A stretch of 64,000 nucleotides of DNA from positions 1,915,972-1,979,971 of the forward strand of contig NW_004797276.1 of assembly GCF_000002075.1 (NCBI RefSeq). The letters run 5' to 3'. The translations under genes and the position numbers were made by a program. Shown here piece after piece: positions 22,601 through 63,400 of this stretch. Source of the DNA: Aplysia californica (lineage: Eukaryota). The notes beneath the pieces are model-generated. The model ran no database searches, was not told the origin of the DNA, and saw only the letters and a list, made by a program, of their open reading frames with translations. Every line of letters begins with the position of its first letter. Position 1 is the first letter of the stretch.

Positions 22601-25600
22601 GCACAACTGAGCCTGGGCTTGGATGAGGTCATCACGCTCACGACTATGACCACTGGTCAGAAGGGTGCTTATCCTGAGCCTCCTCCTTCTCAGCCCTTCC
22701 CCCTCCCTTACACAGAGGACTTTGAAAGTAAGGATCATTTGCTCATTTTTCCTTGTGTCGCTGCTTCAACAAAAATGGATCGACTTTTTTATTGGGCTTT
22801 ACTCAGCTCCCAGCTGTGGTTTGGTTGTTTTTGTGGTTGGCTGTTGTTTTTATCCAATTACTAACACTTGTCTGACAGGCAGTATATGGTTCCATCACTT
22901 CCTATCCAAATTCAGATCTTGGTCCACATTGANNNNNNNNNNNNNNNNNNNNNNNNNNNNNNNNNNNNNNNNNNNNNNNNNNNNNNNNNNNNNNNNNNNN
23001 NNNNNNNNNNNNNNNNNNNNNNNNNNNNNNNNNNNNNNNNNNNNNNNNNNNNNNNNNNNNNNNNNNNNNNNNNNNNNNNNNNNNNAATTTCTTAGAGCAT
23101 CAAAATTATTTTTATGCCTGTTTTACCTTACCATTTGAAATCTTTATATAGCATCATATTCTGGCATTATTAACCAAGAAAACCTGGCTAATGCTTTCAT
23201 TACTCCAAAGTTGCAATGAAGCAGAATAGTCATCAAATTTGTGGGCATGTGCAAGCTAAATGTGTTTCATAACAGTTTGGTGAATTTTTACTAAAATTTA
23301 AGTACTTTTTGTCTTTTGAAATAATCTAAAATCTAGCAATGGCAGCCATGTAATGTACATAAGTAAACAAGTATATAACCAGATGTCAGAGAGATAAAAG
23401 ATTATGCCTAGATAAGGATTTGATGATATATTTGAGAAAAGGTTTAAGCCTTGAGTTTGAGGTCAGATAGGCTTTTCTGGGCACTGTGTTGTGCAAACCA
23501 TGTAGCATTTGATTTTTACGTACAATTAGTTCTAGCATGAAAACACAAATAACTACTCCCAACCCAAATTTTGGAGTCTTTTTGATTTGGTACAGAGTAA
23601 AACAAGGACTTACTAATGCTATTCCTTCTAATGCTTTCTCTACCTTATGAAAAGAAAGAAGAAACAAAAAAAAGTGCCAGAGATTTGCAGTTATTGATGA
23701 CCCAGGAGAAATTACTGATTGCAAGGGACGAACAGTCTTTCTTTTTTTGTGTTGACTTTGCACAATATTATTTCATTTAAATATAACTTATTCTTTAGTA
23801 TAAGAATGTAAAAAGAATTGGAAATTATCAAATACTATTGTCATCCATTTCCACATGGAAGGTTACAAACCACCACAGGAACCCCCCAATTTGGCTCAGT
23901 AGTTTGGTGTATATGAAGTGACTGAATTGCCTGGGCCACATAGTCATGTCAATAGCGAAAAAGTCATTTTCGAAAATAAGAATGAACTACTAATGCATAG
24001 AAACAGATGACTCTGGATGACTCATCAAATTCCAAAAGTTCTCAAAAAAGAACGAAATGGGTAAAAAGTGAGAAAAAAAAGAGCTCGCATAGAAGACCTG
24101 GTGTACAGTAAACCTAGTTATCTATACATAATCTGTGCATGCATACCTTTCTGACTGATTTGATACAGCTAATCAGGTTGGCAGCATATTCATAAAAATG
24201 TTTTAAAAGTGTGGATTCTTTTGCGTTCATCTGGAAACATCAAGAAAATGTGAGACTAATTAATTTGAGACGATAGAATTTCAGCTCTTGGAATTAAAGT
24301 TTGTTTCTTTTACTCCTTCCGAAATGTGAAACTTGACTGGAGGGCTAAATGATGATTTTTTCCCCTCCTGGAACAGGAAAATATACTTACATGCTTTAAA
24401 TAAGCTTTTCTGAATTGTAAATGTTCATACTAAGTTGTATTCATGTTCACTCTTTGGACAAGTTAAACCTCTTTACAAGTTGGTTATTATAATGTTTCTC
24501 AGCTACTTGGAGACTAGTCATCTTTTAACAGATTGCAGCAGTAATCCTCATCTAGGTGAAAGGAGTAAAACTTGTCTAGAAATATATGTTTTTCTTTCTT
24601 GATGAAATCAAAAAAGGTATGAGGTAATACCTGCTGATGGGTGTTGGTTTTCAAAAGTTGTTTGTTTAGAATAAATCAATATGTTTTTCACGTCTCTTTC
24701 TGTTGATGTAATAGGGGACAATACTCTTCGCTGTCTTCCCATCATATCTGCAACACACTTTCAGCAATACCAAAGCTTCATGAATACAATCTTATTGATC
24801 ATAGGCTTCTCACTGTATGAAGAACCCTTCAATCTTGCCCAACAAAGTGGAGCATATGAAATCCTTTCTACAAATAACAACAAGTTCGCCCGGCAAATGA
24901 CAATAATGGAGCCAATTCTCTGGAGCAAATTCGGGGGAGTCTGTAAAACTGTCAATGTCATTGGCAGTACTGACTGGTAAGATGCTGCCAGGCTCAGGCC
25001 AGTGTTCTGTTCACCTTCCAACATATGTATGCTTGTGTGCGCCATGACCCAGGCTTGAAAAAAATTAGAAACAGATGCTAACATGTTGCTAATCAGCTTC
25101 AGTTTGTTTTTTAACTTCTGCTCATAGGGGTTTACCAATAGTAGCTTGAGACTTATTACATCAGTTTAGTTGAGAGAGAAAACCTTGAACATAGTCTTTG
25201 GATCGTTTGGGGCGTTTTTTATTCTTAAAATCTCATGGAATTTTTCAGGAAAATCTGACCATACTAATTTTGTTCGATTGAAAGTAATCCAAATTTGAAT
25301 GACTACTTTGGTCTCTAAGAGTTTGGGTTTTTTTGTTTGTTTGTTTTTTCAATTATCTTTCTCTTTGATACATATGTACTTTAAAAACTGCCCTAATGTT
25401 GAAGCAATAGAAGGCCTACAGTAATACAATTGGACAGCATAAATGAATGATTTGCACTAAGTCTAATGAACAGAAAATTATAAACTGCTCACAGAAATGC
25501 ATTTATAAATGTCTCACTCACTCTTTGAAAAAGGGAATCTAAAAAAACCGTTTGCTTGAGACCTGCCACTATCTAGATGACAGAAATAGTGAGGCAACAG

Positions 25601-41706: not shown

Positions 41707-41844
41707 ATGGCAATGCACTTCACAACTCTGGTTGCTGTGGTGTGTGCTACAGTCTGTGGAGCCTATTCACAGTCCATTGTGTTTGATGACGCTCCTGGAA
41801 TGGGGCGCCAGTTTGATGGAATAGGAGGTCTAAGTGGCGGAGGT
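41707..41844 (+). CDS. GALC: GALC copy 2 coding exon 1 (MAMHF...[11 protein letters not shown])
   Basis: Acceptor ends at 41683; donor GGT|gtaagt. Confidence 0.93.
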
Positions 41845-57491: not shown

Positions 57492-60400
57492 CTCTCTATG
57501 CCATATGAAATCTTTACGTAACATCATATTCCAGCGTTAAGAAAACCAAAACTTGAAATGAAGCAGTGGAATACAGTCATCAAATTTGTGGCATGTGCAA
57601 GCTGAATGTGTTTCATAACATTTTTGTGAATTTTTACTAAAATTTAACAGTTACATACTTCTTGTCTTTTGAAATAATCTAAAATCTGACATTGCCAGTA
57701 TGAACAAGTATATAACCAGATGTCACAGAAATAAAAGATTATGCCCAGATAAGGATTTGTGATATGTTGGAGAAAAGGTTTAAGCCTTGAGCTTGAGGTT
57801 AGATAGGCTTTTCTGGTCACTTTGTTGTCCAAACCAGGTAGAATTTGATTTTTACGTACAATTAGCTTGAAAACAAAAACAACTACTCCCAACCCAAATT
57901 TCTGAGTCTCTTTGATTTGGTACAGAGTCAAACAACGACATAAACTGGTGCTACTTTTTTAGATGCTAACTCTATATTCTGAAAAGAAAGAAGAAACAAA
58001 CAAAAAAGTCCCTGAGATATGTGATGACACAGGAGAAATCACTGATCGCAATGAAAGAAATCTTTCTTTTCTTTTTTTCTGTTGACTTTGCATAATGCTA
58101 TTTCAATTAAAAATAACTTATTCTTTAGTATAAGAATGTAAAAAAATTTGAAAACTATCAAATAATGTTGTCATCCATTTCCACATGGAAGGTTACAAAC
58201 CACCACAGGAACCCCCCAATTTGGCTCAGCAGTTTGGTGTATATGAAGTGACTAAATTGCCCGGGCCGCATGGTAATGTCATTAGACAACTTTCGCTGCA
58301 AGCTCCAATAGTTTGGTGTGGGGGCTCCGGTCCAGCAGATGCTGGCAACAAATCACTCAATATAGCCGGCAGTAGGAACTGGTGAGATGCTGAGGGTTTG
58401 CTCTCTCTGTAGAGAGACTGTAGTGTTGTATCAATAACCTATGTATTCATATACTGTGAAACAGTCTTTTTTTTTCTACCAGCCGATAATTTTTGCAGCC
58501 CCAAGTAGTTTTATAAAACAACAACAAAACATTACAGAAAGCCACATGGGCCTTTCTCTTCCTTTTATATAATTTTGTCGACTGACATGCAACTTGTGAA
58601 ATTTGCAAAAATTATGTGCTTGTGGAAAAAGGACTAATTTACAGTACTCCTGACCCAATTACTGTATACCAGATTTTTTTTTAGCTTAGAACTTGAATGT
58701 GCAATTTTTAAAATTTTTAAAGAAATTCACGAATTCAAGTCATTTGTTAATAAACAAGCGGCTGCTACTGCTCTGAAACACTTAACTCTGGACGACTCAA
58801 ATTGCAAATTCCAGAGGTCGGCAAAAAATGAAATGGGTAAAACGTGAAAAAGAAAAAGAGCACACGAAGAAGACCTGGTGTACAGTAAACTTAGTTATCT
58901 ATACATAATCCATGCATGCATTGACCTTTCTGACCTATCTTATACAGCTAATCAGGTAGGCTGCATATTCAGAAAAAATTTAAGTGGATCTTTGCTTTCC
59001 TCATGGAAGCAGCAAGAAAATGTGAGACTAATCAATTTGCTACAATAGAGTTGTGTTAAATGTTCGCTCTTTGGACAAGTTCAACCTCTCTACAAGTTGG
59101 TTACTGTCTCTCAGCTGGCTGGAGAATGGTCATCTATTTACAGGTGGTTTTGCAGCACTGATCTTAATCTTGGTGAAAGGAGCCAAAATTGTCTAGAAAT
59201 ATTTATTTTTTTCTTTTTTGAAGAAATCGCAAAGGTGTGAAGTAATACCCGCTGATTAGTGTTGGTTTTCAGAAAGTTGGTAATAAATCAAAATGATTTT
59301 CACGTCCTTTTCTGTTGATCAGATTTTATACGGGACAATATTCTTCACTGTCTTCCCATCATATCTGCAACACACTTTCAGCAATACCAAAGCTTCATGA
59401 ATACAATCTTATTGATCATAGGCTACTCACTGTATGAAGAGCCCTTCAATCTTGCCCAACAAAGTGGAGCATATGAAATCCTTTCTACAAATAACAACAA
59501 GTTTGCCCGGCAAATGACAATAATGGAGCCAGTCTTCTGGTGCAAATTCGGGGGAGTCAGTAAAACTGTCAATGTCATTGGCAGTACTGACTGGTAAGAT
59601 GCTGCCAGGCTCAGGCCAGTGTTCTGTTCACCTTCCAACATATGTATGCTTGTGTGCGCCATGACCCAGGCTTGAAAAAATTACAAGCAGATGCTAACAT
59701 GTTGCTAATCAGCTTCAGTTTACCGATTAATTTTCTGCTCATGGGGGTTTACCAATAGTAACTTGAGACTTATTACATCATTTTTTAAGGGAGATACAGG
59801 CCTTGAACTTTGTCTTCGGGTTGTTGTTTTTATTCATTCTTAAAATCTCATGGAATTTTCAGGAAAATCTGACCATGCAAATTTGATTCAATTTAAAGTA
59901 ATCCAGATTTGAACGATAATAGTGATGAAGCCATTGTGGGCTTAATTCTGTCTCGGAGATAGAAGGACACTGATTTGCTGTGACAATGAATACTAAAACT
60001 ATGGAAATTCCTGTGCCGAGATGATGTACTTTTTAAGCTGTGCAATGAAAGAAGAGTGAGAGCAGGCTCATCATTTTGTTCTGAAGATATGAATATGATT
60101 GCTAATCTCACAAAAGGACTCATTGAAGACTTGTCTTCTTGCAATGATGCTGTCTTGCTTTTGCTTTCTGATACCGTTTGTCTCTATAGACTGCCTGCAT
60201 GGTTTGGCTTACTGCTGTGGCAAGACAGTGTAGTATGTGGTGTGTTCTCAGATGATGTGAGTGGTTGATGATTGCTCTTGTGTGTTTTTCTCCATCGATT
60301 TCTTTTCTAAGTTGCCTTTAAACTACTTTGTCTTGCCATAGTCTACTGTATTTGATACTAGTAACTGAAAAGTTAAGTCTTTTTCAAAATGTGAAATATA

Positions 60401-63400
60401 TGTGTATAGATATTTCAAACAAAGCTATCAAAGTGGGTTTTTTTAGCAATTATATGGTGAAATGACACCCCATTGTAACATGTATACCTGTTTCAGGGAT
60501 CGGCATGCTTGCACAGAATGAGTTATAACTTTCCAGTTTATGTTTTGACATTAATTTTAATCAGTTGCTAGTGATAGAATTGTTAGTATCTTCTAAGTGT
60601 AATTCTATTTATCTATCTTTTTTATTTTATTTTAGGGGAGTTTTAAACCAAACATGGTTACACCAAAAACAGACACTGATATTTTTTTCTTTCTTTGTCT
60701 TTTTAAGAAAACTAGACAAGCCGAAATGCTCACATGTCTAATCAGAAAAGAATTTCGAGGTTATGTCGACTAAATCATCACTAGCAACACTCACATAACA
60801 CAATTAAAATTATCAAGGCCCCGAGTTTCAAGATAGCAAAGAGAAGAAAGAGATATGAGAATGCAAGTGTCAGTTGCAGGCCGGAGAGTAGCGTGGCCAG
60901 TTTACTGTGTGCCTACATTTATCACACACACTTTAATGGGTGTCAGCGTTCTCAATGTAACAGTGAAGTTGATTTGTGGGAGAAGTGCTGAAAAGCAGTA
61001 ACTGTACATTACCTTTTAAAAACTTACATGGTTTTGTTGAAATTGAGGAACTGTTTTCACATTTGAGTAGAGTTGTACATTATTCGAGACCGGGCCCAGA
61101 TGTACTCTGGACGAGGCCACAAGAGGTTGCCGCTTACCTGTCTGCCTGCGGCTGACTGTCGCCCTCCTAACGGAGGCCAGCCAGAAGTAGAAGAAGAAGA
61201 AGGTGTACATTATTTTCAGTTTCCTTTTCAGTGTCAGTCCCATGATTAAAAGAAGAAACATCCAAGAACTACCAGGGAAAGCCCTAAATTTCTATAATAA
61301 TGTGTTTTCTCAGCTTACCAAGCAGCTCAGGAGCCAAATTTATTGGCTCCTCAAATTGGGTCTTTTGAGGTAGTGAAATCCCAGAATGCCTCTCATAACA
61401 TGACTGCTCGTCAAACTGTTCAAGTTCCGCCTCTAAAGTGGTGCCCCTTCACTTTGAGCTTCCCATATGCTGTTATAGGTTCTAATTGGTAAGCAGTCTG
61501 TGATTACATATTTTTCTACTCTGATTTGAAGATCTGGCATAAAGATCAGGTAATATCCATAAGATAAGTTGTTAAAAGCAAAAAATTATTGTTGTTAAAG
61601 GCAAATGATTCTAACTTTTGTTTCTTGAGGAGTGCTGTCAAGTGCACACCTAAGGTCATACTTTTTCAAGGAAATTGTTTCACATGGAGCTGGCTGGCAG
61701 AAGTCTGTTATAAATCTTTTATTAAAAATCTTCTGAAATCAAAACAAAAATGGAAAAGGGAAAAGAAGATATTTCTTGTCATTGCATTGAGTAAGTGGCA
61801 GAATAAGACAAGATTTTTTTTAAAACTGTTCTATCATGTATGAGACTGGACAGATTCTAAACCAGGCCTTCAGATATTCCTTCAGATTTGTTTGCTTTTC
61901 CTTTCCATTTACATGCGCAACCCAAGACCATCATTTTTTTCCTGTTCTCTACTCTTCTGTTGATACTTATATCTATAAAAAAGAATAAAAATGTGTAATG
62001 CAAATTTTGTTTGACCAACAAATGGAGCAGACTGAACACCACACTCAATGAACCCAGAGTACCATGCTGTGGACCATTTGTTCATCCCTTCAAGTCATTT
62101 TTACAAGGACATAATAACATAGTATATTGTATATTTACTTGACTTGCCAGTTTTGGGCCAGTGTGCTGATGTCTTTGGTACTGGCTGCTTGTTGCTCTCA
62201 TTATGTCTACTGGTCCCATGCTCGGCTGATAAATCTGACAGTTCATCCGCTCTCCTCAAAGTTGTTGTTTTTTGTGTGGTAATCTCCAAGAAAAGCAGAT
62301 CCTAAATCACACGCTTTCTCATCTAAGTAAGTGCAAACTGCACTTGCTCATTTACTTGAAGATGTTTTAGAATATGAAGCTAAAGTTGGTATTGGGTTTT
62401 TTTTGTTGATGTTTTTTAAAAAAAAATGAAATAGACATGTTCTGACTATTGTAAGGTGATTAGCGATTTATGTTTATCAAAATTGTGCTGCAGAAGTTAT
62501 GAATGCCCAATGTCATAAAAATGTGTAGATCAATGAAATTAGTCTCAGCTAATATCCGACCTTTTAGGGGATCTAGTGAGAAGAGAAAAGCAGAGTAAAT
62601 GATATCTCCTCCGCACACCATCCACGACTTTTAAAAACTTTTCTCTTGTCCAGCAGTCTTCCTTCAACCAGTATTATTGTCCCTGCACTTTACAGTTGGT
62701 TTCTTGTGTTCTGTTCTTAATGAAAATAATGACTGACTGAGTGGAGGGAAACTTCTTATATTTGCCTTACTTTAAGAAAGTTTTATGGTTTGATACCAAT
62801 TCAACTCATGTTTGGATAAATTGAATGAGCCAAACTATTTGACTAAGGCTGGACATTCTTTCATATGTTTTCTACTTAATGCTTTATGTTTGTACTTCCG
62901 AACTCCCCCTCTCAGACATGTCTGGGGTATTACATATGACTAGGGTCTCCTAGTTTCATCCTGTATGTTCTTGACATTTTTATATGATCTTTCTGTCTTT
63001 TTCATTTTATATCTTTTAACTTAAATTCACAATTTTTACTTCACTGTTTGTACACTTTAGACTTTCTATTTTTCAAATCTTCATATTTTTCTCTTTAGAG
63101 AAAGTGGAGCTTGCTAATGAATCTTGTGTAGAATGATGTTTTCGATACATGTACCACAATACCACACAGTAGCTCTATTTTATTTAATTATTTTTGTCAC
63201 TGGTAAGTAAGTTGTTGATTTTCTTTTCCCTCACCACCCCCCCCCTCTTTTTTGTTTTTAGATTGCCTATTTATTCAAGAAAATTATTAATGCTCATGAA
63301 GAGTAATGGTGAATCATTATTGCCATGTGAATCTTTGTCCTCCAGAATTTTGATAGTATTCATTCGTTTTTCTCACAATATTTGCACACTGTTTTCAATG

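Follow-up and report, generated by a model that had tools for sequence, protein, structure and literature searches.

The window analysed here is the whole 64,000-nucleotide (nt) stretch C6:1915972-1979971 of the 927-megabase genome of Aplysia californica; its contig, C6, carries three tandem genes (copies 1, 2 and 3) for the GH59 glycosidase galactocerebrosidase (GALC), and our subject is a cluster of three alternative versions of a single exon—15a, 15b and 15c—found in copy 2. This gene extends from approximately position 41707 of the window to a point 3.4 kilobases (kb) past its end, and is intact up to the stop codon. Exons of the locus, as well as the RefSeq product, match Pfam PF02057, PF17387 and PF21708 (the GH59 catalytic, central and C-terminal lectin domains); copies 1 and 3 align with copy 2 across exons and introns alike, at 75-86% identity. 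There are about five GH59 genes in Aplysia, and the swap cluster is found in some of them.

Taking copy 2 in the direction of transcription, we see first the constitutive exon 14 (a match to PF17387, contained in RefSeq P0270 and P0221), then the three variants and, beyond the window, exon 16; the latter begins at C6:1980470, 499 nt past the window end (L001:499-669), its first base, a G, finishing the Trp codon that is split across the 15/16 junction. Each variant is bounded by an AG acceptor and a GT donor, carries the reading frame from phase 1 to phase 2 and is open in that frame only; all three lengths are of the form 3n+1 (Table 1). That the exons are homologous is apparent from their common match to profile positions 1-45 of PF21708 (E-values of 2.8e-4, 8.9e-6 and 1.8e-6) and from pairwise tblastn comparisons, which give E-values of 5e-8 to 4e-4. 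An alignment of eight paralogous copies of exon 15 contains ten invariant columns; likeness between variants is greatest before an invariant Trp, and divergence, including changes in length, is greatest in the loop directly after it. The introns that follow 15a and 15b also share a common start, gt(g/a)agatgctg. A six-frame scan with a hidden Markov model found exactly three copies, and no fourth variant, between exons 14 and 16, a run of 135 N at 57290-57424 excepted. In all of these respects—coordinates, lengths, phases, splice sites, the 3n+1 rule, homology, the shared intron start and the count of three—an earlier reading of the window from its letters alone (hereafter the sequence-only reading) agrees with our analysis in every detail.

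As every variant is 3n+1, skipping all of them or including two yields an early stop: entered one base off frame, 15b reaches a stop after 4 codons and 15c after 17, and joining exon 14 directly to exon 16 gives a stop after 7. A productive frame therefore results from single inclusion only, a property that bears on whether 15a, 15b and 15c are ALTERNATIVES; with their early stops, the skipped and double forms would be expected to be removed by nonsense-mediated decay.

Gene models and RNA point the same way. RefSeq isoform X1 (XP_005089503.1, 692 amino acids) carries 15a and isoform X2 (XP_005089504.1, 686 amino acids) carries 15b; both are placed on the window's own contig and exon 15 is the sole difference between them. 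The products of copies 1 and 3, with a 15b-type exon, fall in the same 90% protein cluster. The public gene models examined each have exactly one exon-15 variant. Four RNA runs were aligned to the cluster, including contigs of runs X12 and X13 and two polyA raw-read runs, X21 and X22. In X13 a 778-nt contig aligns with zero mismatches across the junctions 55806>56892 and 57033>58192, thus joining exons 13, 14 and 15a. It covers 58192-58382, stopping one base past 15a; this would be the de Bruijn graph fork expected if more than one continuation were present. The polyA runs have zero reads on any exon of copy 2, the gene being silent there, and are hence uninformative on the choice of exon or tissue. 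Together with the swaps seen in other lophotrochozoans (below), the X1/X2 pair and the 57033>58192 junction lend good support to the mutually exclusive cassette that the sequence-only reading had proposed.

Table 1. Features of the exon-15 cluster, its surroundings and its paralogous counterparts in Aplysia; positions are those of the window unless a contig is named.
Feature	Position	Strand	Character	Remark
Exon 14	56892..57033	+	constitutive, ahead of cluster	exits phase 1; encodes end of GH59 central domain
Intron block directly after exon 14	57034..57225	+	96-97% identical in three gene copies	
Exon 15a	58192..58381	+	190 nt; b-class; long loop after Trp-Cys with N-K-S sequon	
Conserved flank upstream of 15b	59387..59421	+	97% identical in three copies	
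Exon 15b	59422..59593	+	172 nt; derived b-class; short polar loop without sequon	
Conserved block downstream of 15b	59594..59718	+	125 nt; 98% identical in three copies	
Exon 15c	61314..61488	+	175 nt; c-class; WCPxxLxFP loop without sequon	absent from RefSeq models of copy 2
15a relic, gene copy 1	23864..23950	+	in-frame stop, remainder deleted	
Sole surviving exon 15, gene copy 1	24805..24976	+	b-type	
c-type exon of C20 paralog	L014:4884-5061 (C20:2369884-2370061)		178 nt; intact, in phase	unused by RefSeq XP_012942715.1

The segment exchanged can be placed on the known structure of the enzyme. The copy-2 protein matches mouse GALC (PDB 3zr5) over its full length (E-value 2.7e-212) and resembles it (PDB 3zr5, 4ccc) in its three-domain layout, in its catalytic Glu motifs—WNERP and SED are retained, aligned to mouse E182 and E258—and in its pocket Trp: the Trp of the 'PIVWC' motif pairs with chain residue 512 of 3zr5, numbered W524 by the authors of the structure, bearing out the earlier placement of the exon in the W524 pocket loop. 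The role of W524 in GALC has been described (PMC4445328), its human equivalent, Trp540, is among the listed pocket residues (PMC13187500), and the saposin A dimer lies over the GALC active site, contacting all three domains (PMC5764952). Since the variants diverge most in the loop right after this Trp, the swap most likely alters the rim of the pocket, its glycan or the surface that faces a lipid-presenting partner, as judged from the alignment. Some exon-15 variants of other molluscs (P0253 and P0264, with short matches such as P0031, P0033 and P0058) have I-E-S-C-P-W or I-D-T-C-R-P in place of x-W-C; lacking a Trp at the usual place, they indicate that the pocket Trp is not invariant across the family.

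The tandem copies show what becomes of variants that fall out of use. In copies 1 and 3, 15a and 15c have been lost by deletion and 15b is the only variant retained; the array is thus old enough for unused variants to have decayed, whereas copy 2 keeps all three intact. The GH59 paralog on C20 has a b-type and a c-type exon, both intact and in phase. The ratio of non-synonymous to synonymous substitution (dN/dS), which the sequence-only reading had asked for variant by variant, is 0.14-0.43 for 15b of copy 2 against the paralogous copies, with 0.14 against copy 3 and the highest value, 0.43, for exon 15b of copy 1; against the C20 paralog it is 0.42 for the b-type exon and 0.24 for the c-type exon (that is, 15c), at a dS of approximately 1. 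In 15b of copy 1 the Cys after the pocket Trp is replaced by Ser and a Cys is gained seven residues later (W-S-K-F...V-C-K versus W-C-K-F...V-S-K).

The same exon is exchanged well beyond Aplysia. Comparing RefSeq isoforms within 90% clusters, we find it swapped in the brachiopod Lingula anatina and, besides Aplysia, in ten or more molluscs: in the gastropods Physella acuta, Littorina saxatilis (with three variants), Babylonia areolata and Haliotis asinina, and in Crassostrea gigas, Mytilus trossulus, M. edulis, M. galloprovincialis, Mizuhopecten yessoensis and Ylistrum balloti. Two classes of exon recur: a c-class, in which Trp-Cys is followed by P-x-x-L-x-F/T-P in a loop of constant length, and a b-class with a polar loop. 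An N-x-S/T sequon is found in the loop of 0 of the 16 c-class exons versus 19 of the 34 others, and almost all isoform pairs have it in the non-c variant. The exon position swapped is identical in Aplysia and in these isoform sets, as is the pairing of one c-class with one b-class exon; unlike most sets, which have two variants, copy 2 has two of the b-class and one of the c-class, as Littorina does. One gene of the Physella genome contains both a b and a c exon, 425 nt apart and with b first, as in Aplysia, and 15c is 70% identical to the exon used in the Physella RefSeq isoform X1.

In a tree of the exon itself, built on 60 columns and with weak deep forks, 15c joins its c-type counterparts in Physella, Biomphalaria and Plakobranchus (support 99/90), and c-type exons cluster across molluscs and Lingula; 15a stands beside the b-type exon of Physella, and 15b forms a derived Aplysia branch with the C20 b-type exon. 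For this tree, the two c-type peptides that lack annotation were extended by the Trp from the 15/16 junction, so as to match the rows cut from database proteins. With the exon masked, a tree of full-length proteins unites the C6 and C20 genes of Aplysia with the Physella gene in a heterobranch clade; the C41 gene, with only one exon at this position, falls in a separate, gastropod-wide clade.

The survey also turned up another swap cluster, at approximately residues 197-233 within the catalytic domain, where isoforms of Gigantopelta (P0277/P0276/P0161), Littorina (P0313/P0182), Babylonia (P0169/P0316), Mercenaria and Ruditapes exchange a stretch that ends at a HYPG motif; Gigantopelta has three variants of it, and in Littorina its combination with the exon-15 swap yields six isoforms. 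Copy 2 of Aplysia has a single copy of the HYPG-stretch exon. The Mytilus GALC 90% cluster (P0194) includes 197-amino-acid 'exosome complex component CSL4' proteins as well as M. coruscus 'GALC' models of 866-927 amino acids, which suggests that these members are models fused with a neighbouring gene. In the C20 gene of Aplysia the first two thirds are doubled (C20:2336518-2348699 and 2350226-2362415; L006-L009), with 99.5% identity over 12.2 kb and the doubled stretches flanking a gap of 100 N; this is most likely a duplication in the assembly, not biology.

The cluster is real and ancient, and its exons are in all likelihood mutually exclusive. For copy 2, we consider it likely that 15a, 15b and 15c all belong to it, having arisen by old tandem exon duplication, with one variant per mRNA to give isoenzymes that differ at the rim of the pocket. 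Each mRNA would take one of the three between position 57033 and C6:1980470, exclusivity being enforced at least by the reading frame, with wrong forms presumably cleared by decay. The resulting enzymes would present a long polar loop with a sequon (15a), a short polar loop (15b) or a hydrophobic, proline-bracketed loop (15c) at the pocket rim, and from their sequences we infer that they may differ in their behaviour towards substrate, saposin or glycan. Use of 15c in Aplysia is part of this reading, at the strength of an expectation from its conservation and intactness.

Several observations weigh against that reading. Exon 15b is without coverage in all four RNA runs. Exon 15c is covered in X12 and X13, but the contigs cross its donor and extend into the following intron by 80-107 nt, a pattern expected of unspliced RNA or stray DNA, so that they do not demonstrate its splicing. 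No spliced read or database protein with 15c of copy 2 was found in the four runs, in the 90% cluster or by a peptide search: a word-based protein search with the 15c peptide returned zero matches, and a profile search of representative proteins, in which close relatives are collapsed, returned relatives below approximately 55% identity only. Lastly, 15b of copy 3 is 98.3%, and its exon 14 95.8%, identical to copy 2, so the X2 model could partly derive from copy 3 reads. Accordingly, of the junctions from 57033 that the sequence-only reading had suggested mapping, that to 58192 was found, 59422 was uncovered and no spliced read was seen at 61314; its 'at least three glycosidases' are matched by isoforms X1 and X2 for 15a and 15b, splicing of 15c being unseen and no isoform with it being on record.

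The alternative that survives best is a two-way switch, with 15a and 15b in use and 15c a silent or very rarely used remnant of an ancestral c-type exon that has yet to decay. The absence of 15c from every RefSeq isoform and cluster member, the empty peptide search and the contigs that run from it into the intron are all in keeping with this, as is the annotation of the C20 paralog with its b-type exon only. What makes it unlikely is the state of the exon itself: the frame of 15c is open, its AG and GT are intact and its phase is right, it differs from its C20 counterpart at a dN/dS of 0.24 over a dS of approximately 1, and it retains 70% identity to an exon in use in Physella, whereas copies 1 and 3, over the lifetime of the array, have deleted or disrupted the exons that fell out of use.

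A second alternative makes the switch an artefact of annotation, with only 15a spliced in copy 2 and isoform X2 assembled from reads of copies 1 or 3 mis-mapped to a near-identical 15b. The tandem copies are similar enough for such an error (identity between them is 95.8-97.9% for exon 14 and 95.3-98.3% for 15b), and 15a alone has been observed in the RNA of copy 2. We nevertheless regard this explanation as very improbable, for 15b of copy 2 is intact, lies between conserved intron flanks and shows a dN/dS of 0.14 against copy 3, and b/c swaps have been modelled independently in approximately 12 species in a single-copy context. Joint inclusion of variants, repeating a segment of the protein, can be dismissed: any pair shifts the frame into a stop within 4-17 codons, all of the public models have exactly one variant, and nothing was found in its favour.

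How the choice between 15a, 15b and 15c is made can be narrowed from the sequence of the locus. Steric hindrance of the alpha-tropomyosin type is excluded by the length of the introns between variants (1040 and 1720 nt), and a U2/U12 clash of the JNK type by the donors (GTGAGA, GTAAGA and GTAAGC), all of which are U2-type; the exon edges have no ATATCC donor and no TCCTTRAC branch motif was found. A crude search for docking/selector pairing, between 57034-57250 and the variant flanks, gave duplex energies that did not stand out from shuffles (z-scores of -1.75 to +1.5); an 8-base-pair match involving the shared AUGCUG was spotted by eye, and a scan for inverted repeats was dominated by an AT microsatellite. 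The intron blocks listed in Table 1, that is, the one after exon 14 and the two flanking 15b, may be elements that control splicing, as their conservation between the gene copies, against 75-86% identity for the introns at large, would suggest; they contain no RBFOX GCAUG motif. Gene conversion may help to explain why 15b and its flanks are nearly identical in the three copies; as a full account it fails for the 125-nt downstream block, which is more conserved than the synonymous sites of 15b.

Within the first of these blocks, at 57106-57225, a perfect TACTAAC branch-point motif is followed by cag/gcag, an arrangement reminiscent of an alternative or decoy acceptor; the RNA runs aligned gave no coverage of this interval. 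Further along, run X12 has a 652-nt contig entirely within the intron between 15b and 15c (60070-60721, depth 5.6), and at 61085-61130 lies a short repeat common to far deeper contigs that continue elsewhere; the RNA at both places probably represents transposon-derived or independent transcripts.

Tandem-duplicated, mutually exclusive exons that retune a binding site are known from FGFR2 (IIIb/IIIc), PKM (exons 9/10) and Drosophila Mhc and MRP. The Aplysia cluster is like these in having adjacent homologous exons of similar length and the same phase, of which one would enter each mRNA, in encoding a segment of a ligand or substrate site and in its long conservation. It is unlike them in its host, a lysosomal-type GH59 glycosidase; in that the loop swapped is lent to the active site by a non-catalytic lectin domain; in having up to three variants; and in that the enforcement visible to us is the 3n+1 frame, not a known RNA structure or spliceosome clash. 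Vertebrate GALC is not known to have more than a single exon at this position, or an alternative loop.

The sequence-only reading knew of no description of such a swap in GH59 enzymes. On this, our full-text searches found no paper combining galactocerebrosidase with mutually exclusive exons or with splicing, and the sole mention of a mollusc concerned up-regulation of galactocerebrosidase in infected Biomphalaria; RefSeq, on the other hand, already holds the a/b swap here and a b/c swap in approximately 12 species. What is new, then, is the third, unannotated exon, the connection to W524 and the recognition of two conserved classes that molluscs share with a brachiopod; the RefSeq isoforms were already known. 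The c-type exons of copy 2 and of the C20 paralog are both absent from current models and mark gaps in the annotation.

As to what the exchange is for, we offer a tentative proposal, somewhat less likely in our view to be right than wrong. A switch more than 500 million years old would, in molluscs and brachiopods, toggle the loop beside W524 between a polar, often glycosylated form and a hydrophobic one, giving enzymes with differing lipid or aglycone preference or dependence on saposin (for example, for the animal's own galactosylceramide as against galactolipids from algae in its diet); in Aplysia the switch would have been extended to three forms, after which the tandem copies each froze on one.

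The cluster supplies natural, evolution-tested variants of the sole loop contributed to the GALC active site by the lectin domain, a loop that in the mouse complex adjoins the docking surface of saposin A (PMC5764952), and comparison of the b- and c-classes could reveal how it governs the access of substrate to the enzyme that is defective in Krabbe disease. Here a metabolic hydrolase has been diversified by exon swapping instead of gene duplication, and a single array in Aplysia displays both routes: the switch kept in copy 2 and lost in copies 1 and 3.

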